A stretch of DNA of 54,926 nucleotides from Girardia tigrina (taxonomy: Eukaryota). Below the pieces are notes generated by a model. It did no database searches. It was given only the letters and a program-made list of their open reading frames with translations, and was not told where the DNA came from. A program made the translations under genes and the position numbers. This document shows, one piece after another, positions 827 to 53,966 of the stretch. How positions within the stretch are numbered: position 1 is the first letter of the stretch; every line of letters begins with the position of its first letter. The stretch is taken from NCBI GenBank assembly GCA_001938485.1, contig MQRK01231705.1, positions 1 through 54,926 of the forward strand, written 5' to 3'.

Positions 827-1065
827 GTAATGTTCCTCTTCCCCTCCAAAAACTCAACCTGTCAAAAATTTGGCTGTTCTTAGAAATTAAGGAATAAAAT
901 AAAGACGCCGGAAAGGCGACGAAATCGACCGAAAACCGTACAGGTCGTTATTAACCCCCCAAAATTCTGAATTTTTTTCAATTTCACATAGAAAGTTTCT
1001 ATCAGCCGTAAATTTCTGTTAACCACCATTTTTTTTTAAAAACTGGTGGGTAAGGGGAACTTTAC
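827..1065. mobile_element. MITE-like element with imperfect 22-bp terminal inverted repeats
   Basis: GTAATGTTCCTCTTCCCCTCCA (827-848) versus reverse complement of 1044-1065 GTAAAGTTCCCCTTACCCACCA, 18/22 identical; non-coding interior. Confidence 0.45.
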
Positions 1066-3036
1066 AATATTTTAAAAATTAACAAAAACTTTAAAATCTA
1101 GATGTTCCTCTTATAATACATATTTTTTATGATATGTAAAAAAATATTGTCTCCATTTTTTTACAGTAATTAAATTTTTTTGTAAATAAAATGCATAATT
1201 TTAAGAAAAATCTCGTTTTTTAATATCCCAATTTTAAAATATTTATATTTTATTTTAAGAAATATTTTAATCTAACACACTTAAACAACATAATAAAAAG
1301 TAGGGATAATAGATAAGCTTAGTAGTTATATTTTTTTACTGAACATAAAACCTATCTGTATTTTACTAATAATAATCTTTTTTTTAAATAATTATAGAAT
1401 AGGTAAAATTTGAATGTAATCTAATCAAATACGAGCTAGAGAGGGCGAATTTACTCTGACCCAGAATAGGATAATTTGTTTGAGACACAGACGACTAATA
1501 TATTGATATGATCTTGCTGCATCATTAGAACTGACTGAGCTCTAATTATGATACAGGTGAACATGAATGGATACCACAAGATACAAGAATCACTGGAACA
1601 GAAGAAGCAGGATAAATATTAATTAGATGTCTTAATAAGCCTCACACACTCTCAGATGCCAATTATATTTGATAAAAAGAAAATTAATTATTTATTTATC
1701 AGGTGAATGTTTAATGATGAAAAAGGTTGATGGTGGTGATTGTTTCATTTGCATTTTGAAAAAAAACATCATATTTTTACAACCGTAAAAAATTATTATT
1801 TTCTTTTTTTGTCTTTTTTTCTAATCTGCTTTATTAAAAAAATGAAAATTAAAAAAAATATTAAAATTGATTTCTGATTTTTGATTAATTTATTTCAATT
1901 ATTTAGATTTTTTTAATAAAAATTGTCGGATGTTAAAAGTAGATAAATGTATGATTGAAAATTATTTTTGAATTATATTTAATAGAAATTAGGAATTTTA
2001 GAATTATGAGGAGTAAATAAATTAATGAGGAAATTAAATAATTACGTAAAACATAAAAAACACATGAAGTTTATAATGCTACAATCCCATAATTTTCGAA
2101 ATAGTTAAACATGAAATATATTTTAGAAGAAAAAGCTTTTTTTATGTTACAAAAGTGACGAATTTATAATGAAATAGAGAATCTATTGCAGATAAGCAAC
2201 AAGATTTTTTGTCTTGAATATGATCATTTGAGACAAGATTCAACTGTAATGGAAAATAAGAGCGAGTGGATTTCTATCTTCCATTAACTAAATAAATTAA
2301 ATAACACAAAATAATCTGGAAAAATTTATTATTTAATTAGATCAACATAAGTTTATTTCAGGATGGTTGGCATTAGTGGTTTGAAATAAATAGATTGTTC
2401 TCTTTAGCTCCAAATCAGCAATAAGTACATTTCTGTACCAGTAAAAATGTATCAACTGATATCATCAACATGAGATTTGCTGAACAAATGTCGATTCCAT
2501 GTTTAGACTGCTACTAACCATTCAAGCAGTTTGGTGGAAATTCGTCGGCGACAGTGCCAAGTGTGACGAATTTCCAGTACCGACTAAACCAGAAAACCCG
2601 ATAAATGATTAGTGCTCCGGTTGGATGCGTCGCAGCTGTTATGGAAATCGATTTTTTTGTTTTCTACTTGCGACAAAATCCGCTGACATTGACTGGTACC
2701 GTATACCTACATACTAGTTTGGAACGGTAGGAATCTATTATTTCAACCTATGGTCGACGTATAGTGTTTGCATAACGGTACATATAATAACATACATAAA
2801 AATAACATTGCCGTACTATAAACAAAAATACTCCTTGTTACAGGAAATGAAAGACTGTTTAATTAAATCAAATTCTAGATAAAAGTTACACATAAAAATT
2901 CAAATTATCGGTATGACAGTTAAAAAAAATAATCATAATAAACCGTGTCTTATGATATTTGTGAGGTAGTCAATTGATGCATAGATGGACATGGCCCAAC
3001 TGCACGTTGTCACGGGATCTGACATGGAATTCTCTC

Positions 3037-3159
3037 TTTGAATTTGACAAATTCTGACAGATTGTGTCACGTTAAGCCAACCAATTTTATCCAATACGAC
3101 ACTAATGCGATCCGAATCTGAGGGTCTCCAACGTTGTATTTCGGATAAACAACACGTCG
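3037..3159 (-). pseudogene. MRPL23: N-terminal fragment resembling mitochondrial ribosomal protein L23
   Basis: Minus frame not in the ORF track: RRVVYPKYNVGDPQIRIALVSYWIKLVGLT*HNLSEFVKFK, matching the recalled metazoan mRpL23 N-terminus pattern R.V.YP.Y..G.PQ.R......W.KLV....P...V.F; one stop. Confidence 0.65.
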
Positions 3160-3160
3160 T

Positions 3161-3217
3161 TTTCAGCACATCGCCTTTACATTTCCTCGTGCAATGGAAA
3201 CAACTGATTTTATCCAT
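3161..3217 (-). pseudogene. Fragment resembling the start of the first LIM domain of actin-binding LIM protein (abLIM/UNC-115)
   Basis: MDKISCFHCTRKCKGDVLK inside ORF 2933..3256 fits the abLIM LIM1 start I.C..C...C.G[ED]VL[KR]; truncated before the H..CF half of the finger. Confidence 0.55.
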
Positions 3218-3318
3218 TAAAAAATTCGATTGGAAATGATTTCTGGCGATAGTCATTCTCTACTTGGATTGACTAAGACTTGGATTTAATTCCATTGATT
3301 TTTTTTTAAATCAATAAA

Positions 3319-3322
<4 letters not shown>

Positions 3323-3353
<31 letters not shown>
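3323..3353. repeat. (TA)n microsatellite
   Basis: Direct reading; further (TA)n tracts near 4116, 7159, 11418, 14122, 19258-19390, 35097 and 35472. Confidence 0.95.
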
Positions 3354-3357
<4 letters not shown>

Positions 3358-3362
3358 AAAAA

Positions 3363-3400
3363 GACGCGTTTCGAGATAATAAAAATCCCATCACCAGGTC
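3363..3400 (-). ncRNA. Degenerate minimal type I hammerhead ribozyme motif
   Basis: GAC CUGGUGA U GGGAU-UUUUAUU-AUCUC GAAA CGCGUC; A6>G in the core and the 3' strand of stem I is lost. Confidence 0.55.
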
Positions 3401-4036
3401 ACAAAATGTACCAAGCAGGTATACTATATGGAAACTTTCCGAAAATAGATTTTACCTTACAATGTATATATACTGACGTTAAAATCAATTATTTTTTGAA
3501 AAACTTTGGAAGAACGAAGGAATTCAAAACAAAATGTATTTTGTCGATGTGCGATTGTTTTGCATTGGTCAACTGTGTTATTATACTGAGTGTCACCAGT
3601 GTCAAACCTGGTACAGTTGAGAGAACACAACGTTCTCTCAGATTTCCATTTGGTCAGACATTTCAGTCAAATTGCATCGATGAGATTTCGGATTGTTTTA
3701 AGTTTAATGGGAAGGCTAAAATTGAGTTGATTGTAATGATTGTGAGAAGTTTCATCTCAAAGATTAGCTTTTGGTGTGCTGTTAGTTGTCATCTTTATCA
3801 TATGTCTCCGTTACCTTGTAAAGTATGGATTGATAGAGAAAACATATCGTTTTCTCAAATGGTAATTGATAGCTGCCAATGGTTGGTTTGCGAGAATGAG
3901 ATTGATTGCATTTAGTGCATTTTTCTTAATTTTAAGGAAAAGTGAAATAAAGTTATTTTCATCCAATAATTTATTGGATAAATTTTATTTATTTTCGGAA
4001 AGTTTCCATATAGTGTACCTGCTTGGTACATTTTGT

Positions 4037-4077
4037 GACCTGATGGTGGGATTTTTATTATCTCGAAACGCGTCGTC
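4037..4077 (+). ncRNA. Minimal type I hammerhead ribozyme motif (PLE-type, palindromic stem III)
   Basis: GAC CUGAUGG U GGGAU-UUUUAUU-AUCUC GAAA CGCGUC GUC; stem I GAC/GUC, ACGCGU palindrome, GUC cleavage triplet at 4072-4074; A9>G deviation. Confidence 0.7.
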
Positions 4078-5895
4078 TTGTTTTTATCCCTATTATATAG
4101 ATTTTACCTTACAATGTATATATATATATATATACATACATTTAATATATGTATATACCCAATATATGTATATATATATATATATATATACATATATACT
4201 AAAAAAATATATGCAATCACTACATCAACAATCTAAGGAAATTGTTGAGCGATTTCTTGAGTAAATATTTTAAATTCAGATTATCAACTTCCAAATAATA
4301 TAAGTAGTTCAAATATCTAGAAAATTTAGTTTTAATTTAATAGTAATTATTATTTTTTCAATGCTATCATTAAATAAAATCCTCTTGGTCTCGATCCGCC
4401 CGATCTCCGAGAACCGGACGGTGGTAGTAGCAGCGCGCAACGGAGATTAGAAAGGGAGTTCGAATTCATCGGTTTCCTGGGCCCATTTTGTTATGATTTT
4501 ATATTCACTCGATGAGATCATTTTATTGAGTATACAGATTTCAATTATTGTTAATCGAAATGTATTTTGACTTTGTTTTAACTCAAAAGAACGAAAATCA
4601 CAATAAGTAAAATATATTATTCAATTTCAAATTTTATTGAAAGAAACCTTTTTGTAAAGAAATCACTCGATTGCGATAATTTCGAAAATAAAATCGTCCA
4701 AAATTAGTTAAGATAAATTGCAAAATGTATACGCTCGTTTACAATTCTCTCAATCGAAATAATTCGTCAATAAATCGTTCAAAAATAGCTCAGTAAATCG
4801 TAATATTTCGATATCAGTGAAGGCAAATAAAAATATCAGTGATTGACATTAAAATTTTGTTCATTTGAATTGTCTTAAGGAGATTCTGGATGAAGGGTTC
4901 GAATTTAAATTGGAAGTATAAATAATGATAACACCACATACTAAAGTAATTTAAATTCCGAACAGTCTTTATATGCAAAGGAAAAGCCAAAAAAGAAGTT
5001 ATAGTCTTTTAAAAAGAAGTTATATTCTTTTATTTGGGTGGGCCTCTCAATTGAGAACTCCGGTAGTTTTTATTTTTTTAAGTAGTTTAATTTTAACTCG
5101 AAATTTTTAATATTTCATTACTGTATGTCATTTAAAAAATTAATTTAATTAATTAATATTTTTAATAGAAAATATTTATTATTTTTAATTTAAACCAAAT
5201 ATATTTTCATAAGTAAATGTAGTAATTATTAATATTTTTTATGTTTCTTTCAAATTAAGATGCTTAGTTTTGAAGGCACAATTTCTAATTCGGTTAATGA
5301 AAATTATAAATGTATTATTTAAAAAATATGAAAATATAAAATGTTTTTACTAAAAAATAAAGTATTTATTATGAAAAGTGATTTTTCTTAGAAAATAATA
5401 TTATTTCACCCAGTCAGGATATTAATTGCACATTAACATTCATACATGCTCAACTGGGGATATCACCCTCCAAAGGGAAAAAATTTCGCTGTCGGGTGAG
5501 TGATGATCATATGTTAAATACAAAGAAAAATTTTAAATAAATAAATAATATTCTTAGTTATAACTTGATAGGGATTGAAAACACGGCAAGGAGCACTAAT
5601 TCTAGAAGACAGAGAAAAAGTAGGATAAATGAAGAATTAAAGGAGATTTTAATTTTCAGTAAACAGATTAAAAATACTCTCCTCTACCAAACATAGTGGT
5701 CAAGAATATCAATAATTATAAAATTAATGTTAAATTCATATCCGTTTAAACAGTTGCGGTTCTTCCTCATTCAATCTGAAAGCGTACCCCTAAATTTGGA
5801 AATTAAAGATTGATAAATTTTCTTACGAACATTTATAATTAACAATGTTACAATAATTTTCAGAATTATGTATATATATTTTAAATAATTTTTAA

Positions 5896-6610
5896 CACTA
5901 TTCATACCGACACTTCACGTATACCTATTCCTACCGCGGCCTGTCAAATGACTGGTCTTTCACAACTTATATTTTTCAATATTGAATGCAGACCAATAGC
6001 CAGCTTACCAGTATAAAAATATATTTTCTTTTATTCAATAGTACATAAACTACATTTTATTCTTTTTCGTCGCGCTTTTTACAAATGGGTTTCTCAACTG
6101 TACATTTTCCGCATACGTATATTTTACATTTTATACAGATTTTATTCGCCATATTATCTTTACAATACCTTATCTGACATGTTTTCCGTTCACGGGAACC
6201 AGTACTTGTACTGGCGATGGGTATTGGTTGACTTTCTTTGCCTATCTCTTGTTGGTATTCGATTCCAAGTTCTTCTGACAATTGGAATAGAAATTCCTGT
6301 CTTGTAAATTCTCCTCCCGTAATTTCTTTATATAACACACATGCATTTATTCCAGCTAAATCCAAGATATTAAAAAAAATGCAAAGGTCATCTCCGTGAT
6401 TTAGATTTTACCGAATAATTTCTGGCCATTTGTTCAGTCACATCTACGCCAAATTTTGTTCTATAATACAGCTGAATTGTCTCCGATGTTCGGGTGTCAT
6501 TTTCTTCAACTTGTACGGAATTGCGCATTGAAATGAGAATCAGAACTTTCTTTTTTGGTTTGGCTTTGTAAACTGTCAACATATAATTATTTCAGCGATA
6601 GAGTTTGGTT
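5896..6610 (-). mobile_element. piggyBac transposon 3' remnant (transposase C-terminus and terminus)
   Basis: ORF 6388..6582 has YYRTKFGVDVTEQM (YNxTKxGVDxxDQ motif); ORF 6057..6365 has the Cys-rich domain CQIRYC...CIKCKIYVCGKC; TTAA at 5892-5895 precedes the terminus CACTATTCATACCG. Confidence 0.85.
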
Positions 6611-7029: not shown

Positions 7030-7157
7030 AAAATATTTAAAACAGCATTACGTTGTCCACTTTGAATGTTAATTAAAGGGTTGTGTTGTCGTATCAAAAA
7101 GGATTTACAGAACTGCCGCTCGTTATAAAGCTAATATAAAAAAGTAATATTAAAAAA

Positions 7158-7160
<3 letters not shown>
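7030..7160. repeat. Dispersed ~130-bp repeat, copy 1, ending in a (TA)n tract
   Basis: AATATTTAAAACAGC.TTACGTTGTC...CTGCCGCTCGTTATAAAGCTAATATAAA..GTAATATTAAAAAAG(TA)n; near-identical to 13996-14121. Confidence 0.85.
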
Positions 7161-7202
<42 letters not shown>

Positions 7203-9247: not shown

Positions 9248-10636
9248 CAGGGTGGGCCAAAAGTAGGGCTACAGTTAACACCTAAACATTTTATCTTTAT
9301 TAGAAATTTAGACATTTATTTACATACATTATATTTACATAATAAACATTTTGCATTGAACATTTAATCTCTCAAGTGCTCAAAATGTCCACCTTCAACC
9401 TTGCAACAATCTCTATATCTGTCCAAAACACTCTGACACACAGTACGACACAAATTCCGATCTCCATCAATTTCAGTGAATGCATCTGAAATGTAATCTT
9501 TCAATTCATTCACTGTGTGGGGTTCCTCTCATAAACCTTGTTCTTGACTACACCCCAAAAAAAGAAATTCATTGGTGTCATGTCAGGTGAACGTGGTGGC
9601 TATTCAATTCAGGCCCGCCTTCCAAACCAATGCTGCGGAAAGACTTGATGAAGATACTCTCTTACAGTCTTCGCATAATGTGGAGGTACTCCATCTTGCT
9701 GGAAGTACAGTTCATCAAAGTTAGCTTTGGTTCTGAGTTGTGGTACTACCACGTCACGTAGCATTTCCAAATAATTGTCTCCAGTAACAGTTCCATCAAA
9801 GAACACGGGCCCGATAACACCTTCACTGGANNNNNNNNNNNNNNNNNNNNNNNNNNNNNNNNNNNNNNNNNNNNNNNNNNNNNNNNNNNNNNNNNNNNNN
9901 NNNNNNNNNNNNNNNNNNNNNNNNNNNNNNNNNNNNNNNNNNNNNNNNNNNNNNNNNNNNNNNNNNNNNNNNNNNNNNNNNNNNNNNNNNNNNNNNNNNN
10001 NNNNNNNNNNNNNNNNNNNNNNNNNNNNNNNNNNNNNNNNNNNNNNNNNNNNNNNNNNNNNNNNNNNNNNNNNNNNNNNNNNNNNNNNNNNNNNNNNNNN
10101 NNNNNNNNNNNNNNNNNNNNNNNNNNNNNNNNNNNNNNNNNNNNNNNNNNNNNNNNNNNNNNNNNNNNNNNNNNNNNNNNNNNNNNNNNNNNNNNNNNNN
10201 NNNNNNNNNNNNNNNNNNNNNNNNNNNNNNNNNNNNNNNNNNNNNNNNNNNNNNNNNNNNNNNNNNNNNNNNNNNNNNNNNNNNNNNNNNNNNNNNNNNN
10301 NNNNNNNNNNNNNNNNNNNNNNNNNNNNNNNNNNNNNNNNNNNNNNNNNNNNNNNNNNNNNNNNNNNNNNNNNNNNNNNNNNNNNNNNNNNNNNNNNNNN
10401 NNNNNNNNNNNNNNNNNNNNNNNNNNNNNNNNNNNNNNNNNNNNNNNNNNNNNNNNNNNNNNNNNNNNNNNNNNNNNNNNNNNNNNNNNNNNNNNNNNNN
10501 NNNNNNNNNNNNNNNNNNNNNNNNNTGTAACATAGAATAAGAGTTCAGTAATATTTTCTATAATTTATATCTAAACGTGATTGTGAAGGCGAAACAGATA
10601 ATGAAGCAACTGTAACCCTACTTTTGGCCCACCCTG
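9248..10636 (-). mobile_element. Tc1/mariner DD41D (rosa-type) transposon, defective, interior in a gap
   Basis: TIRs CAGGGTGGGCCAAAAGTAGGG.TACAGTT at both ends, TA flanks; QQDGVPPH...PPRSPDMTPMNFFFWG with 41 residues between the 2nd D and the 3rd catalytic position (D>N here); two stops. Confidence 0.85.
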
Positions 10637-13784: not shown

Positions 13785-13995
13785 CTAAATAACCAAAACA
13801 ATAAATAAAAATATGTTAAAACTAAAAATAAATACATAAATAATAATTATTTTTAGAATGTCTGGTCAATTTGAAATTTTTGAAAATTTAATTTTTTAAC
13901 ATCTAAAATATTTAAAGTCGAGAATCTAAGTAAATGCAGTGTACAAAATTTAAATCTAAGTTAAAATAAAAACAAGTGTTTGGATAAAAATTTTA

Positions 13996-14120
13996 ATATT
14001 TAAAACAGCGTTACGTTGTCAATTTTGAATATTAATTAATGGGTTGTATTGTCGTATCAAAAAGGATTTACTGAACTGCCGCTCGTTATAAAGCTAATAT
14101 AAAGAAGTAATATTAAAAAA

Positions 14121-14121
<1 letters not shown>
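13996..14121. repeat. Dispersed ~130-bp repeat, copy 2, ending in a (TA)n tract
   Basis: Same orientation and near-identical to 7030-7160. Confidence 0.85.
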
Positions 14122-14163
<42 letters not shown>

Positions 14164-15957: not shown

Positions 15958-16000
15958 ATTGCATTGTTAAAAAAATGTTAAAAATGCATTGTTAAAAGGG

Positions 16001-17160
16001 ACTAACAATGAATCAAATTTAAAAATTATATCACGATCTCCTTTAGTATATAAACGATACGTTGAAGATATATTTCTAGTTTTTAAAAATCAGGCTGATG
16101 TACTTCCATTTTTAAATTTCATGAATTCGTTACATTCAAATGTTACTTTTACAGATGAAAATGAAAGGAATGGAGTCTTACCTTTTCTGGATCTTTTGGT
16201 TGAAAGAAAATCTCTTAGTTACGAGACTGGAATTTATAGGAAGCAAACTGATACATGTTTAAATACTTCACCAGATAGTTTTTGTGAATTTAAGTATAAA
16301 AGAAACATGATTAAAGGTTTAAGTTATCGCTCCTAGTCGTTGTCTTCCACTTTTGTTAAATCTGTAGAAAATGTTAATAAACTAAGTTCGTTGTTAAATA
16401 AGAATGGTTATTCTAAATCTTTTCTAGAAAAATTAATAAAGGAAACAGTAGATAAAATACTTTTGAAAGATTTTTCGAAAAATCAGAGTTTGGCTTCTCC
16501 TGATGGATCTAAGAAAGAAATCGATGGATCGTTAGATATGAATAATATGCATAAATATTGTTTAATTGTACCTTATTCTGAAAGATTTAAAACTTTAAAA
16601 AACTTTAAAAGCAACTAACAATGAATTAAATTTAAAAATTATATCGCGATCTCATAAAATTCAAAATATGTTCAGTAATAAATCTATTACTCCTTTAACA
16701 CTGTGTTCTGATATTGTTTATGAATATAAATGTAATGGGTGCGATGCCACATACATTGGAGAGACTGCCCGTCATCTCTGTAAACGAATTCAAGAACATG
16801 GTCGAAAAGAGAGTAAGAGTAATATTGCAGAACATAGGAAAAATGTAAATGTGATGCTAATTTTGATAATTTCAAAATTCTGTGTAAGCATTTTGACAGT
16901 TATTGGTAGAGAATGTCGTGTGAAGCATTGTTAATTAGGTCACGTTGCCCTAAAATCAATGTTCAATCGGCAGTCTCAACCAGCTTATTGAGAATTTTTG
17001 ATTAGCATGATTTCATGCAATCGATTGCATAATCATCATTTTTGTATTTATATACAGGTGAATTGATTATTAATTAGTGACCTGAAGATGACGGTAGATC
17101 CGTCGAAATATTTTGTCTTAAAATATATTTTTTAATGGATCAGTGTTGTTATTAAAAGAA
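16001..17160 (+). mobile_element. 5'-truncated Penelope-like retroelement (RT C-terminal half, GIY-YIG endonuclease, pLTR)
   Basis: YKRYVEDIF (YVDD variant), LPFLDLLV, IYRK, NGY; IVYEYKCNGCDATYIGETARHLCKRIQEH GIY-YIG motif; multiple stops and frameshifts; hammerhead downstream. Confidence 0.9.
17079..17117 (+). ncRNA. Minimal type I hammerhead ribozyme in the PLE pLTR
   Basis: GAC CUGAAGA U GACGG-UAGAU-CCGUC GAAA UAUUUU GUC; intact CUGANGA/GAAA core, 5-bp stem II, near-palindromic stem III. Confidence 0.75.
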
Positions 17161-26829: not shown

Positions 26830-29045
26830 GTTCTAGATACGCAATTCTAGATAAGCCACACGTTTCTTCTTGAAGCTTCCAACATTTAAACTTTGTTCAA
26901 TTTCATTACTGAGATTGATCAGTCTTTCTCACTTCCATTAAAAAATGAAACTTGTCACTTTCTTTCGTGTGTTTCTCCAGCACTGCAGATTTTCTGCGGA
27001 AGGGTGCAATGTCCATTTCTATCTGTGGTTACTCATTTCGGTACTTTTTCAGTAGTGTTATAATAACTTTCTCTGTGTTTTTCCATCCTAGTTCTGCCTC
27101 CCTCATAGTTCGCTGAAGCTTGCGGTCAAGAGTTACAAGATCTCTCCGAATACTTTTATGCAATTCTTTTTCGGCTTCAATTTCTAACTAGATTTCTTAT
27201 ATCCTTTTTTTAGATATAAGACTACACAATTGTAATCGGATCCACAGTCATGAAAAGGCTTAGATTGTGCATCTTTGCTCTTGTTCATGTTTTCTGAAAG
27301 CAAAAGAAATTAATCCAGTAGTTCTCTCCTCTTCGAGTTCTGGGTGGGTCTAGCTGGTGCTTTTCCACTCATTATGGAGAAAAAAGGAGTTTACTACCTT
27401 CATGTCTTTCTCTTCAGCTAGTAATACTAACCTTTTCCCATTATCTGACATGTGTGAACTGTATGCATACTTTCCGACGCTGGGAACTGGCTTTCTCGTC
27501 AGAGTATATGCGGTAATTGAAGTCTCATTCAACCACCAACATGCACCCGGACTGTTTAGTTTCTGCTTTTCTTTTTCAACTATGGTGTTTAGAGAGTCAT
27601 CGAATGGAGTTTACTCACTGTCACTGTATCCAAAGTCAGTAGGAGAGTAAATTCATACGATAATTATTCTGAAGGAAATGATTTTCGCTTTGAAAATTCG
27701 ATCCGAGAATGCCTCAAACTCGATATCACATTTAGGTTGTCTAGTTAATTGTAGTGCCCTACTTATTTTGTTGTTATTATGCCGTGGAGAAATTTGGAGA
27801 AACAAATTTGCCGAGGAAAAAGATAATAGTTTTGTTGAAAAAATCCATTGAAAAATAAACATAAAATATGTTGTTATTCAGAGACACAATGAAGAATGAT
27901 AATCATAATAGATCTTTAAAAGAAAATAAAAAATAATAAAAAAGAGAAGAAATATAAATAAAACCAAAAAAAACCGAATATCCGAAATTATATATTGTTA
28001 ATTATATCGTTAAGTTGACGATAATTAAAAAATTAGCTGAAGGAAAAAAATCAATAAAATAAAATTGACAATATAAAAAAAAGATAATTAATAACCATGA
28101 ATCGTGAGTTATAAGTCTTAAGATAACGAATAAATTTGCTGTTCTTTTACTGAGAAAATAATATTTCTATATTCCCTAATCGCCTGAAATATCCGGATCT
28201 CGGCTCTCATGTTCATATACGAATATTCGACGTTCATCAATCATCAATTAACCGACATACTATAGAAGGAAATTGTCGTCTCACCATATAATCAAATATT
28301 TTTAAGAAGCAATTTGAACATTACAATTCCCGAATCGTCTGAAATATTCGGATCTCGGCTCTCATATTCATATACGAATATCCGACGTTCCTCAATCATC
28401 AATTAACCGGCATACAATAGAAAGAAATTGTCGTCTCACCATATAATCAAATATTTTGAAGAGGCAATTTGAAGTAACGTTACTTTATCCATTTTTCCCA
28501 CGGAACTCATTTCGTTTTACTGTGATCTATTTTAATTACTTCTTTTTAGTCCTTCCGTTTGTGTTTGATAATTAAGAGTTTTGATTATTTTATCTTTTTA
28601 TTCATTGCATTTGTTTCTTTTGTAACAACAATTTCAAGTTCACAACAACTGAACTTTACTTTGCTCTTACATTAATAAATCAACTCCTCTTTCCCTAATT
28701 TGTGCCATTTGTGGCCAACTGTTGTAAAGGGTCCACTTTTTGTACACTTCATCTACATTTAGCTTTTCTAGAGCATCAGTAACACTCAAGACTTTCTGAT
28801 GATCAAACCTTCAAACGTTCCATATACAGACCTTCTTCAAACCCAACCGCAAATCCCGGCAAGGGGAACATTGGTTGGGTCCCCACTTAGCCTGAGATCC
28901 TATTATTTTGCGAGCGAACCCAGTATTCTCTGTGCTTTCTATTTGTTTAGTAGTATCTAGTAGATTAAGGTGATTACTAATGGATTGCTAGTCCTAGCTG
29001 AGAGTACCCCTTCTCGAATTTAGTTGGGTATCCAGGATCGGCATG
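26830..29045 (-). mobile_element. Old, fragmented RTE-type LINE (5' UTR and APE endonuclease), interrupted about 27700-28500
   Basis: GLKKVCIWNV* near 28815-28845; VGKYAY..HMSDNGKRLV...VVNSFF in ORF 27350..27532; 5' UTR shares GATCCTGG and CTAGCAATCC with the younger RTE. Confidence 0.65.
28171..28473. repeat. Two-unit tandem repeat, period 155 bp
   Basis: ATTCCC.AATCG.CTGAAATAT.CGGATCTCGGCTCTCAT...GCAATTTGAA starting at 28171 and 28326. Confidence 0.9.
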
Positions 29046-37705: not shown

Positions 37706-39187
37706 TAATTATATGCTCACTATATTACAAGGGTATTGGGTATTTTGAACGGTAAGATTATGCGACCAGCATGTTCACTGGTCTCTTTCTTTGTAGTCTC
37801 ATCTTTCCGTTATTGATAATTCATGTTTGGAAATGATAATAATTCTGGTACACTTGATTTCTTTTCATTGAATAAATCCATATAATGTTATTAAAAAAAT
37901 AAACTTAAAAATTATGTTTCTCGATCATAATTTTATATATAAAATCATAAATGATTTCAACTCATTAAAACACTTAAAATTAAAAAATATTCCTCACACT
38001 TATCCTTTAAGTACAGATCATTTTAGAGTCTATATTATCAAAGATATTTTCTTCCTGCTTTCTTTCTTATGGTTACCGAAAAATATAATTTTTATATCTA
38101 AATTTAGACTAATGAAATTTTATTTGAGTCTAAACAAAAGTGATTTAACAGTATTTTTATTGAAAGAACCCTTTCGGTGTTTCCATGTGTTGGATGGTCT
38201 GGTGGAGAAGACAGTGTCGGTTACGATCCGCGAAGAATATCGCTCTGAAAGTTAGAAAGGAAGTCCAAGAAAGCCAAAATGTATCATTGATTCAAAAATT
38301 TTGGAGCTTCAGCTGTTAATTATGGACAATAAACGTAATTCATTTTGTCTTAGTAAACAGTATGGCTTTCGAAGGTGATGGCTGTTATCTCCATATTGAG
38401 GCCGAAAAGAAGTTATATGAGATATCATTAGTTGGTCGTGTCAGTGGATCCAATTCGGATGACATGGAGAATATTCCAAACCAATTGTGTTACAGTGTTT
38501 TCCATCGTACAAAAAATTGAGAAACGATCAAAAAAATATATGAAAAATTTTATATTTGTAGTAACTGGTGTTTTCTTATTTTAAGTAACTGAATTTTGGT
38601 CGTAATATGTTATTTGTCATTTCTAATATTTCATCAGTCTTGTAAATTTGAATGTTTTTTATGATCATTTTCGTCTGAAATGTGTCTAAATGGTGTGAAT
38701 CTCAAAGTGTTGATGGATTTGGTTGTTTCAACTAATGTATATACTTTATTCATATTAAAGAAAAAATAATAACAAAAAAATGGACGCCAAAATGGCAAAA
38801 ATAATTATTTTATCCAAGAATATTTCTCGATTTGTTTGCTCAATCTGTTTTTTCAGTTACTGTTGGAATCACGAGTGATCGATTTTATTATTAAGGAAAG
38901 ACTGATTGTCTGAAAAAACATTATTAATTTATGATCGATTTGTTTAAATCGAATATTGAAATAAATTCGGCGCAATTTCTTTTGAATAGTGCGAGTTTTG
39001 TTCTCGAAATTGTTTAGTTGATATTTTCGAATAAAATTGTTTTCTATCGGGCATTTGAGTTTTACTTTCATTCATATCCTTCAAAAGATATCAGATTTGT
39101 TTTAATAATCTTCCGGCAAAGTTTTAATTTCGAAATTTATATTAAATCTGAGTTCTCTTCAATTTTCTTCTCGGATATATTGAAAGC

Positions 39188-39645
39188 ATGACATCTGCAC
39201 CAAAAATACAAAAAACAGAAAGGATTGGCAAAGTTTACCAAGATCAAGTTTTGAATTCCCTAATAGAAAAGATCGATGAGGTCCAAAGTGATATCCATAA
39301 ACTCAACGAACAAGGAGCGAAGAAATTATCAAAGTTGAAAAGACATTTAATAAAAGCCGACGATCGCTATTTCAGAAACGGGTGAATCTAATCAAAACGA
39401 TCCCGGATTTCTGGATCAATGTGTTGAGTAATCATCCTCAACTGATGTCACGTATCGCTGAACACGTGGAAGATCCACTTCAGTCTCTTACCAGTCTCGA
39501 GGTCGAAGAATTCGACGATATTAAATCTGGTTTCAAAATTATCTCAACGTTTTCTTTGAATGATTATTTCTCGAACTCAACTATAACGAAATCGATTCAC
39601 GTCGTAGAGTCGGAGTGTTCAATGCCGGAGTTCATGCGTTATTTT
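39188..39645 (+). pseudogene. SET: 3'-truncated SET/TAF-I (NAP-family histone chaperone) pseudogene
   Basis: IEKIDEVQSDIHKLNEQ then, after a 1-nt loss at 39314-39318, EEIIKVEKTFNKSRRSLFQKRVNLIKTIPDFWINVLSNHPQL...LEVEEFDDIKSGFKI..F..N.YF.N..I.K; the acidic C-terminus is absent. Confidence 0.85.
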
Positions 39646-52068: not shown

Positions 52069-53353
52069 TTGGGTTGGTCAAAAAGTCATTGCGTTTTTAC
52101 TAAAATATTTATTATCAAAAAATGACATGGATGCAGAAATATTTTTACACGATATACTGTCCATTATTTTCAATCACTTTCTTCCACCTTTTCGGTAGCT
52201 TCATTATTCCTGATTCATAAAAACCTTTGCCTTTGTCAGCAAAAAAGCCGTCTAGCAACGATTTGATGTCATCATCACTGGCGAATGTTTTTTTCTGTTT
52301 TAAGGAATTCCGCAGTGATCTAAGTAAGTGAAAATCCGATGGGGCCAAGTCTGGAGAATACGGTGGGTGCGGCAAAACCTCCCAACCCAGTGAAAAGAGT
52401 TTCTGGCGAGTGGTCAAACTTGTATGTGGTCTTGTGTTATCATGCTGAATTACGACTCCTTTTCGATTTGCCAATTCAGGACGTTCCTGTTTAATTGAAT
52501 GAGCCAATTTCTCCAGCTGACCACAATATCTGTCTGAATTGATGGTTTCATTCATCGGAAGGAGTTCAAAAAACACAATTCCTTTAAAATCCCACCAGAC
52601 GGAAAGCATAACCTTCTTTTGGTGAATTTCTGCTTTTGGGATCGTTTTGGTAGGCTCACCACGTTTTGTCCATGATTGTCGGCGTTCCACATTGTTGTAA
52701 ACAATCCATTTTTCGTCAGCCGTAAACAAGCGCTTCAAAAATGGATCACTTTGTTCTCGCTTTAAAAGGGAATCGCAAATGTCTGTACGTTTCACCAAAT
52801 GAATTTCTTTTAGTTCATGTGGTAACCACATATCGAGTTTACTGACGAATCTAAGTTTCTTTAAATGACTTCCAACACTTGATTTTGATATTTCCAGAGT
52901 CTCTGCAACTTCTCTTGTCGTCATATGTGGATTAGATTTCATCAGTTCTGATATTTTGTCGCCATCAACTTCAACTGGTCGACCTGAGCGTGGTGCATCT
53001 TTCAGATGAAATTTTTCAGAACGAAATTTAGAAAACCAGTATTGACACTGTCGAAGTTTTAAGGAGTCACTACCATATACAAAACATATCTTCTTATGAG
53101 CTTGTACAGCGGTTTTCCCTTTACGAAAATAATGCAACAAAACATGACGAATATGCTCATTTTGATTTTCCATTTGGAATTGACGGTATAGTAATAAATT
53201 AAAACAAAATCAATTAATATTTTGTATAAACATAGTCTGAAAATTAAGGTTTCAGAATATATAATTGAATTTAAATTTTATCATATCGTTTTATATTTTC
53301 AAACTTTTTATTAGGACGTACTGAAAAACGCAATGACTTTTTGGCCAACCCAA
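52069..53353 (-). mobile_element. Full-length mariner (DD34D) transposon
   Basis: 29-bp TIRs TTGGGTTGG[TC]CAAAAAGTCATTGCGTTTT with one mismatch; TA at 52067-52068 and 53354-53355. Confidence 0.96.
52145..53173 (-). CDS. Intact mariner transposase, 342 aa
   Basis: Uninterrupted ORF with HTH, WLPHEL, TADEKW, QHDNTRPH, HPPYSPDLAPSD. Confidence 0.93.
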   Translation of the reverse strand: MENQNEHIRHVLLHYFRKGKTAVQAHKKICFVYGSDSLKLRQCQYWFSKFRSEKFHLKDAPRSGRPVEVDGDKISELMKSNPHMTTREVAETLEISKSSVGSHLKKLRFVSKLDMWLPHELKEIHLVKRTDICDSLLKREQSDPFLKRLFTADEKWIVYNNVERRQSWTKRGEPTKTIPKAEIHQKKVMLSVWWDFKGIVFFELLPMNETINSDRYCGQLEKLAHSIKQERPELANRKGVVIQHDNTRPHTSLTTRQKLFSLGWEVLPHPPYSPDLAPSDFHLLRSLRNSLKQKKTFASDDDIKSLLDGFFADKGKGFYESGIMKLPKRWKKVIENNGQYIV

Positions 53354-53456
53354 TATTTGACTACAAATTTATAATTCGTAATATCTCAAATTTATTCCAA
53401 TTTGAAAATAACATTATTGGGCAAATTTTACCAATGTATTTTCGTAAAATGTTTTT

Positions 53457-53936
53457 AACACTTGATATTGATATTTCCAGAGTCTCTGCCACTTCCCTTG
53501 TCGTCATATGTGAATTAGATTTGATCACTGCTGTTATTTTGTCGCCATCAACTTCAACTGGTCGACCGGAGCGTGGTGCATCTTTCAGATGAAATTTTTC
53601 AGAAAGAAATTTAGAAAACCAGTATTGACACTGTCGAACTTTTAAGGAGTCACTACCATATACAAAACATATCTTCTTATGAGCTTGCACAGCGGTTTTC
53701 CCTTTGCGAAAATAATGCAACAAAACATGACGAATATGCTCATTTTTATTTTCCATTTCGAATTGACGNTAAAGTAATAAATTAAAACAAAATCAATTAA
53801 TATTTTGTATAAACATAGTCTGAAAATTAAGGTTTCAGAATATATAATTGAATTTAAATTTTATCACATCGTTTTATATTTTCAAGCTTTTTATTAGGAC
53901 GTACTCAAAAACGCAATGACTTTTTGGCCAACCCAA
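53457..53936 (-). mobile_element. 3'-truncated second copy of the same mariner
   Basis: Near-identical to 52874-53353, including the TIR and the first ~100 codons (ORF 53361..53756). Confidence 0.92.
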
Positions 53937-53966
53937 TAATATTAGAATTTATATATTATTTATTAT

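Follow-up and report, generated by a model that had tools for sequence, protein, structure and literature searches.

On the minus strand near the left end of a 54,926-nt stretch of Girardia tigrina DNA (contig MQRK01231705.1; the whole stretch is called the window here), what is probably the start of an abLIM/UNC-115 gene is joined directly to an N-terminal fragment of MRPL23 (uL23m) (Table 1). This is a dead chimera with one proven parent, MRPL23, and one probable parent, abLIM. A sequence-only reading had placed the two pieces at 3217-3161 and 3159-3037, followed by a peptide in a third frame; these coordinates and frames are correct, and there is indeed no linker or poly(A) between the pieces. 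The AT-rich window has 16-43% GC per kb and contains 1,919 N of a gapped assembly, the first of them not before position 9831. The chimera sits in a transposon-littered stretch in which relics of DNA transposons are dense. A hAT domain among these relics was confirmed by domain search, and broken mariner, Tc1, gypsy, LINE, piggyBac-like and Penelope-like relics are presumably present as well, judging from motifs in the translations. One mariner transposase ORF of 342 aa (52145-53173, minus strand) appears intact and has a partial tandem copy at 53361-53938 (minus strand, 95% identical). Other repeats are a CpG-rich tandem of two 155-bp copies (28171-28473) and a dispersed repeat of 167 bp (7032-7198 and 13995-14161, 95%) that ends in (TA)n. 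No phage or plasmid matches were found in the window, which therefore is not vector sequence.

Table 1 Features of the chimera, its neighbour and other possible gene-end relics in the window
Feature	Position (strand)	Characteristics and basis
CpG-rich block, 40% GC	2400-2769	Long open frames on both strands
107-aa ORF across the junctions	2933-3256 (-)	abLIM stub is the only part in its parental frame
Third piece, 45% GC	2945-3036 (-)	Sequence and GC; no matches
MRPL23 (uL23m) N-terminal pseudo-fragment	3037-3165 (-)	42-43 codons; PDB, protein-database and alignment matches
Junction, putative microhomology	3161-3165 (-)	2-nt overlap, 4/5 nt with Trp codon; protein alignment only
Probable abLIM/UNC-115 LIM1 start	3161-3217 (-)	19 codons; motif scan, LIM1 HMM
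Upstream leader, 32% GC	3218-3295 (-)	In abLIM frame, interrupted by stop 3262-3260
5'-truncated Penelope-like insertion in (TA)n	3322-4198 (+)	Inverted pLTR, tail, decayed body, pLTR
Penelope-like insertion: inverted pLTR	3350-3450	Pairs with 3987-4087, 93%
Penelope-like insertion: duplicated 28-nt tail	3445-3472 and 4097-4124	
Penelope-like insertion: pLTR with hammerhead-like core	3987-4116	
SET/TAF-I gene, 5' part	39182-39614 (+)	Pfam NAP 4e-17; 75% nt identity

A PDB search with the 31 stop-free codons of 3162-3070 (minus strand) returned uL23m proteins as all of its top 8 matches, with a best E value of 9e-4, and among 1.84 billion representative proteins a single match was found (E 1.1e-5). 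This protein, referred to here as P0001, is a fused gene model of which the C-terminal half is uL23m (E 4.5e-14); it joins an unrelated coiled-coil N-terminus to uL23m and is probably mis-predicted. Used as a query against the window, P0001 was identical at 28 of 42 positions over 3162-3037 and showed no other match. When the codons are compared one at a time, a single base change is enough to explain 12 of 14 differences, and one of them creates a stop within the MRPL23 frame (3069-3067). A second stop, at 3165-3163, probably occupies the place of the P0001 Trp codon that precedes the match. Besides nonsense changes, the piece carries non-conservative changes relative to P0001, and its likeness to this protein collapses beyond 3037, giving a sharp end. 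No further parts of MRPL23 or abLIM were found elsewhere in the 55-kb window, and searches of metagenome and viral contigs turned up no DNA of an MRPL23 parent. The MRPL23-like N-terminus recognized in the sequence-only reading is thus confirmed by the PDB and P0001 matches; the two stops had been overlooked. The piece is an isolated, decayed N-terminal fragment.

The abLIM piece was not recognized in PDB and Pfam searches. The LIM1 HMM gave 13.2 bits (E 0.013 for the window), a score that one of 30 shuffles matched and a second nearly matched (13.3 and 13.0 bits); the full-length profile gave E 0.26, and BLAST within the window returned E values of only 0.02-0.9. Taken alone, the abLIM call is not significant at proteome scale. 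A degenerate pattern was derived from the Cys, Lys, Gly, Asp, Val and Leu positions of the piece, these positions being picked with the abLIM hypothesis in mind. It is unique in the window and is contained in none of 100 shuffles. A scan of metagenomes yielded 55 loci, of which 54 were read and 39 turned out to be abLIM LIM1 starts; the three abLIM loci that were examined each showed four LIM domains and a villin headpiece (VHP). A locus with a human gut metagenome title was kept out of the comparison. The Lys at -3, which lies outside the pattern and is not constrained by it, is found in 39/39 abLIM loci and in 0/15 other matches, and is present in the window. Furthermore, the Met at -5 in the window agrees with the start of several short abLIM isoforms. 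The 19 codons are probably, though not provenly, an abLIM LIM1 start, as had been proposed from the sequence.

The piece is cut ahead of the zinc-binding His/Cys of the first finger. This break lies mid-exon, because in each of the 39 abLIM loci the frame runs beyond it with neither a stop nor a visible intron, and splicing was therefore not the maker of the join. The other end of the piece is ambiguous: Met-Asp-Lys at 3217 stands at the splice-acceptor position of several genomic abLIM loci, and the site 3214-3217 is readable both ways, with one change as spliced sequence and with two changes as an acceptor. At the junction itself the two pieces had been thought to lie one base apart. The MRPL23 match begins at 3162 or at 3165, however, so that the pieces overlap: bases 3162-3161 belong to a Lys codon in either frame, and a further near match comes from the TG that every Trp codon must have. 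This microhomology is putative, being read from a protein alignment.

The third piece is only slightly richer in GC than the MRPL23 piece (0.45 versus 0.39) and has no match in Pfam, NCBIfam or PDB; its proposed nature as a gene fragment was not borne out. It may be the start of MRPL23's own intron rather than a third gene, because its first six bases are one change off a GTGAG donor; alternatively, it may be a third captured fragment. None of the 48 stop-free segments of 2350-4000 had a significant match in Pfam or NCBIfam. Hints of CNOT11 and ANAPC2 among these were dropped, since their best E values (0.02-0.04) are as expected from 48 queries.

The 107-aa ORF does exist at 3256-2933 (minus strand), but neither the MRPL23 codons nor the third-frame peptide is read in it in its own frame. 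A role of the ORF as a functional chimeric gene found no support: homologues were absent among proteins of 59-187 aa, as was an exact record, and no sign of purifying selection was seen. An ORF of such length occurred in 0.45-2% of shuffles (p 0.0045-0.02, for a region chosen post hoc). Sorted by ORF codon position, 8 of the single-base differences to P0001 fall at position 2 and 2 at position 3, which, as far as this alignment can tell, is the opposite of selection on the ORF; some of the changes may predate capture. The ORF is probably incidental.

No TIRs or TSD enclosing the cargo were detected, similarities between the flanks not rising above shuffled controls. In 1000-6500, outside the Penelope-like insertion, no stable hairpin was found ahead of any CTRR-T; old Helitron ends may have decayed. 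LTR or gypsy sequence was recognized on neither flank by blastn and tblastx against the window's own elements only, and the window holds no second copy of the chimera. The chimera is not classed as a Pack element or a Helitron because these terminal features were searched for and not found, and no carrier came to light for the capture cassette that had been proposed. A short frame in the left flank (1535-1612, plus strand) may be a chromodomain-like or transposon-remnant-like sequence.

The immediate neighbour of the chimera is a Penelope-like insertion with (TA)n on both sides. Its layout, with tandem and inverted pLTR, tail and (TA)n target, is that of known Penelope-like elements (PMC8557442), whereas the chimera lies outside the element, past the microsatellite. 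Each of the two copies of the hammerhead-like sequence has one catalytic-core change that the other lacks, Rfam returned no hammerhead match in the insertion, and a GIY-YIG endonuclease remnant was recognized by eye only. The possibility that the 3350/4087 inverted repeat forms the TIRs of a carrier was rejected, as the repeat does not enclose the chimera and belongs to the anatomy of the Penelope-like element. The insertion is a neighbour and not the carrier, and looks younger than the chimera. Read-through could start from its inverted pLTR, which on the minus strand faces the chimera. The body of this insertion, like the MRPL23 piece, entered the searches as separate stop-free pieces. A second Penelope-like relic, unrelated to this one, lies at 15970-17100 (plus strand), with RT thumb and GIY-YIG motifs visible in translation.

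Another 5' gene end, of SET/TAF-I, lies 36 kb from the chimera. This relic comprises the 5' 427 coding nt, with a frameshift caused by a 1-nt deletion, and ends exactly before GT. It shares its 75% nucleotide identity with a JGI transcript-like contig, is nearer to human SET than to plant NRP, an animal affinity with which the abLIM and uL23m pieces agree, and has CpG-containing DNA upstream; no downstream SET exons were found in the window. A stretch of 49% GC follows the relic up to 39770, and the two together are possibly a second mosaic. The MRPL23 piece and the SET relic both end at or near a splice donor, the former one change off and the latter before GT. The SET relic suggests that this genome copies 5' gene ends repeatedly, probably at the DNA level. 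The CpG-rich block next to the chimera (2400-2769), which gave no significant Pfam/NCBIfam or PDB match, possibly belongs to the same patchwork. Two further regions were noticed. A GC-richer stretch at 38180-38520, which precedes the SET relic by some 700 nt, has a 66-codon open frame without Pfam match. The region 4385-4990 contains a 106-nt block of 56% GC with 11 CpG, beside a promoter-like AT region rich in CpG, and may be a further captured 5' end. It has no Pfam match, a PDB search of 4450-4545 was blank or at chance level, and an eIF3g-like identity for 4385-4520 was rejected as unsupported.

Of the multi-gene capture that had been proposed, the chimera has held, with 5' pieces from at least one host gene and probably from two unrelated ones, while the third gene and the carrier have not. 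Our preferred explanation, held with somewhat less than even confidence, is that the dead chimera arose when a Helitron or Pack-type element, its own ends since eroded, captured 5' gene ends at the DNA level. A polymerase copying the beginning of an abLIM gene would have changed template at 2-5 nt of microhomology, continued on the start of an MRPL23 gene, and left that template after ~130 nt. The product would then have decayed and acquired stops, the Penelope-like element inserting beside it later; most likely the chimera is now functionless. The likeliest setting would be one in which open, CpG-rich 5' gene ends are captured as DNA by a non-autonomous transposon of Helitron or Pack-TIR type, through gap-filling or FoSTeS, with ends now eroded or out of reach. 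The microhomology, the DNA-level copying and the carrier are parts of this account that we infer. Capture at the DNA level is favoured because the MRPL23 piece ends sharply, abLIM is broken mid-exon and the SET relic looks genomic, and also because a 2-nt overlap fits the microhomology of animal Pack-TIRs in a window dense in relics of DNA transposons.

The same sense of both pieces and the lack of a proven intron fit an RNA route too, in which a retrotransposon reverse transcriptase would have switched between co-packaged abLIM and MRPL23 mRNAs, yielding a multi-parent partial retrocopy. Pieces that have the same sense, are truncated at the 3' end, lack poly(A) and a TSD and show a micro-overlap are the signature described for such copies (PMC5131818), and Met-Asp-Lys at the abLIM splice-acceptor site is closer to a spliced reading than to an acceptor. 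However, comparison with the window's own elements revealed no LTR/gypsy sequence on either flank, the pieces are very short (57 and about 129 nt) and the SET relic appears genomic, which leaves this route rather unlikely. An origin without any carrier, as the patchwork of a single repair event (MMBIR, or end-joining that took up templated inserts) or as a segmental duplicate shortened by deletions, would account for the absent element ends, the single copy in the window and the short pieces with their micro-overlap. It is nonetheless unlikely, as two coding regions were each broken right at their beginning, which together with the SET relic points to a biased, recurring process.

It could also be argued that only one captured gene is present: a lone pseudo-fragment of an MRPL23 exon, still in its own flanks, in which case the likeness to abLIM would be due to chance and the third piece would be MRPL23 intron. 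The shuffle-range HMM score, the weak BLAST values and the silence of PDB and Pfam agree with this, and an ATG at 3171 could be MRPL23's start, explaining the last four 'abLIM' codons. Against it stand the specificity of the motif for abLIM database-wide, the Lys at -3 with its strict division between abLIM and other loci, the Met at -5, and the position of the abLIM-like stretch directly against an independently proven fragment; we consider this reading quite improbable. An assembly or library chimera might be suspected in a gapped assembly with so many N, but chimeric reads of intact genes would not show the nonsense and non-conservative changes observed, the junction contains no repeat, and no N occurs within 6 kb. 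Such an artefact is very improbable.

The sequence-only reading had regarded gene-fragment capture as described mostly in plants, a view that is weak given the published bat Helitrons (PMC4224331), animal Pack-TIRs (PMC8277862) and LTR retrocopies (PMC5131818). The Helitrons HelibatN3, N22 and N211 of vespertilionid bats carry 5'-biased, sequential captures from unrelated genes, comprising promoter, first exon and partial intron (PMC4224331). The chimera resembles them in having 5'-biased host fragments, probably from two unrelated genes, in an animal genome, and the SET relic, ending before GT and with CpG upstream, resembles their promoter-exon-partial-intron captures (PMC4224331). However, the bat elements have 5' TC and 3' hairpin-CTRR ends and exist in copies, which the chimera lacks in the window, and its fragments are shorter. 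In 100 animal genomes 370 Pack-TIRs were found, with a median microhomology of 2 bp (PMC8277862). Short host pieces, and presumably their joining at ~2 bp of microhomology by template switching, are shared with these and with plant Pack-MULEs (PMC8277862), but TIRs and a TSD, which those elements possess, were not detected around the chimera. LTR-mediated retrocopies with two parents, e.g. CG4799_CG11924_r of Drosophila (PMC5131818), fuse two unlinked genes, as the chimera probably does, and likewise show 3' truncation, no poly(A) and microsimilarity at the switch; flanking LTR-retrotransposon sequence, however, was not recognized at the chimera, where intron loss is unproven. In the literature no description of such gene-fragment capture was found for planarians, in which pseudogene-like piRNA clusters do exist (bioRxiv 10.64898/2026.01.28.702291).

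One dead chimera carries little weight, as 5'-biased capture from multiple genes is already known in bats, flies and other animals. It is improbable, though of larger consequence, that a recurring capture process new to science, possibly an unrecognized family of non-autonomous elements, strings together the 5' ends, 50-400 nt in length, of housekeeping genes (abLIM, MRPL23, SET, CpG-rich blocks) in heterochromatin at Pack-MULE-like density. If this were true, the mosaics could be a source of piRNAs directed at the parent genes or the starting point of chimeric ORFs. Two 5' relics per 55 kb hint that mosaics are common in the lineage; if they are, gene shuffling on the scale of Pack-MULEs would be extended to an invertebrate group, and the mosaics would constitute a testable source of gene-matching piRNAs.
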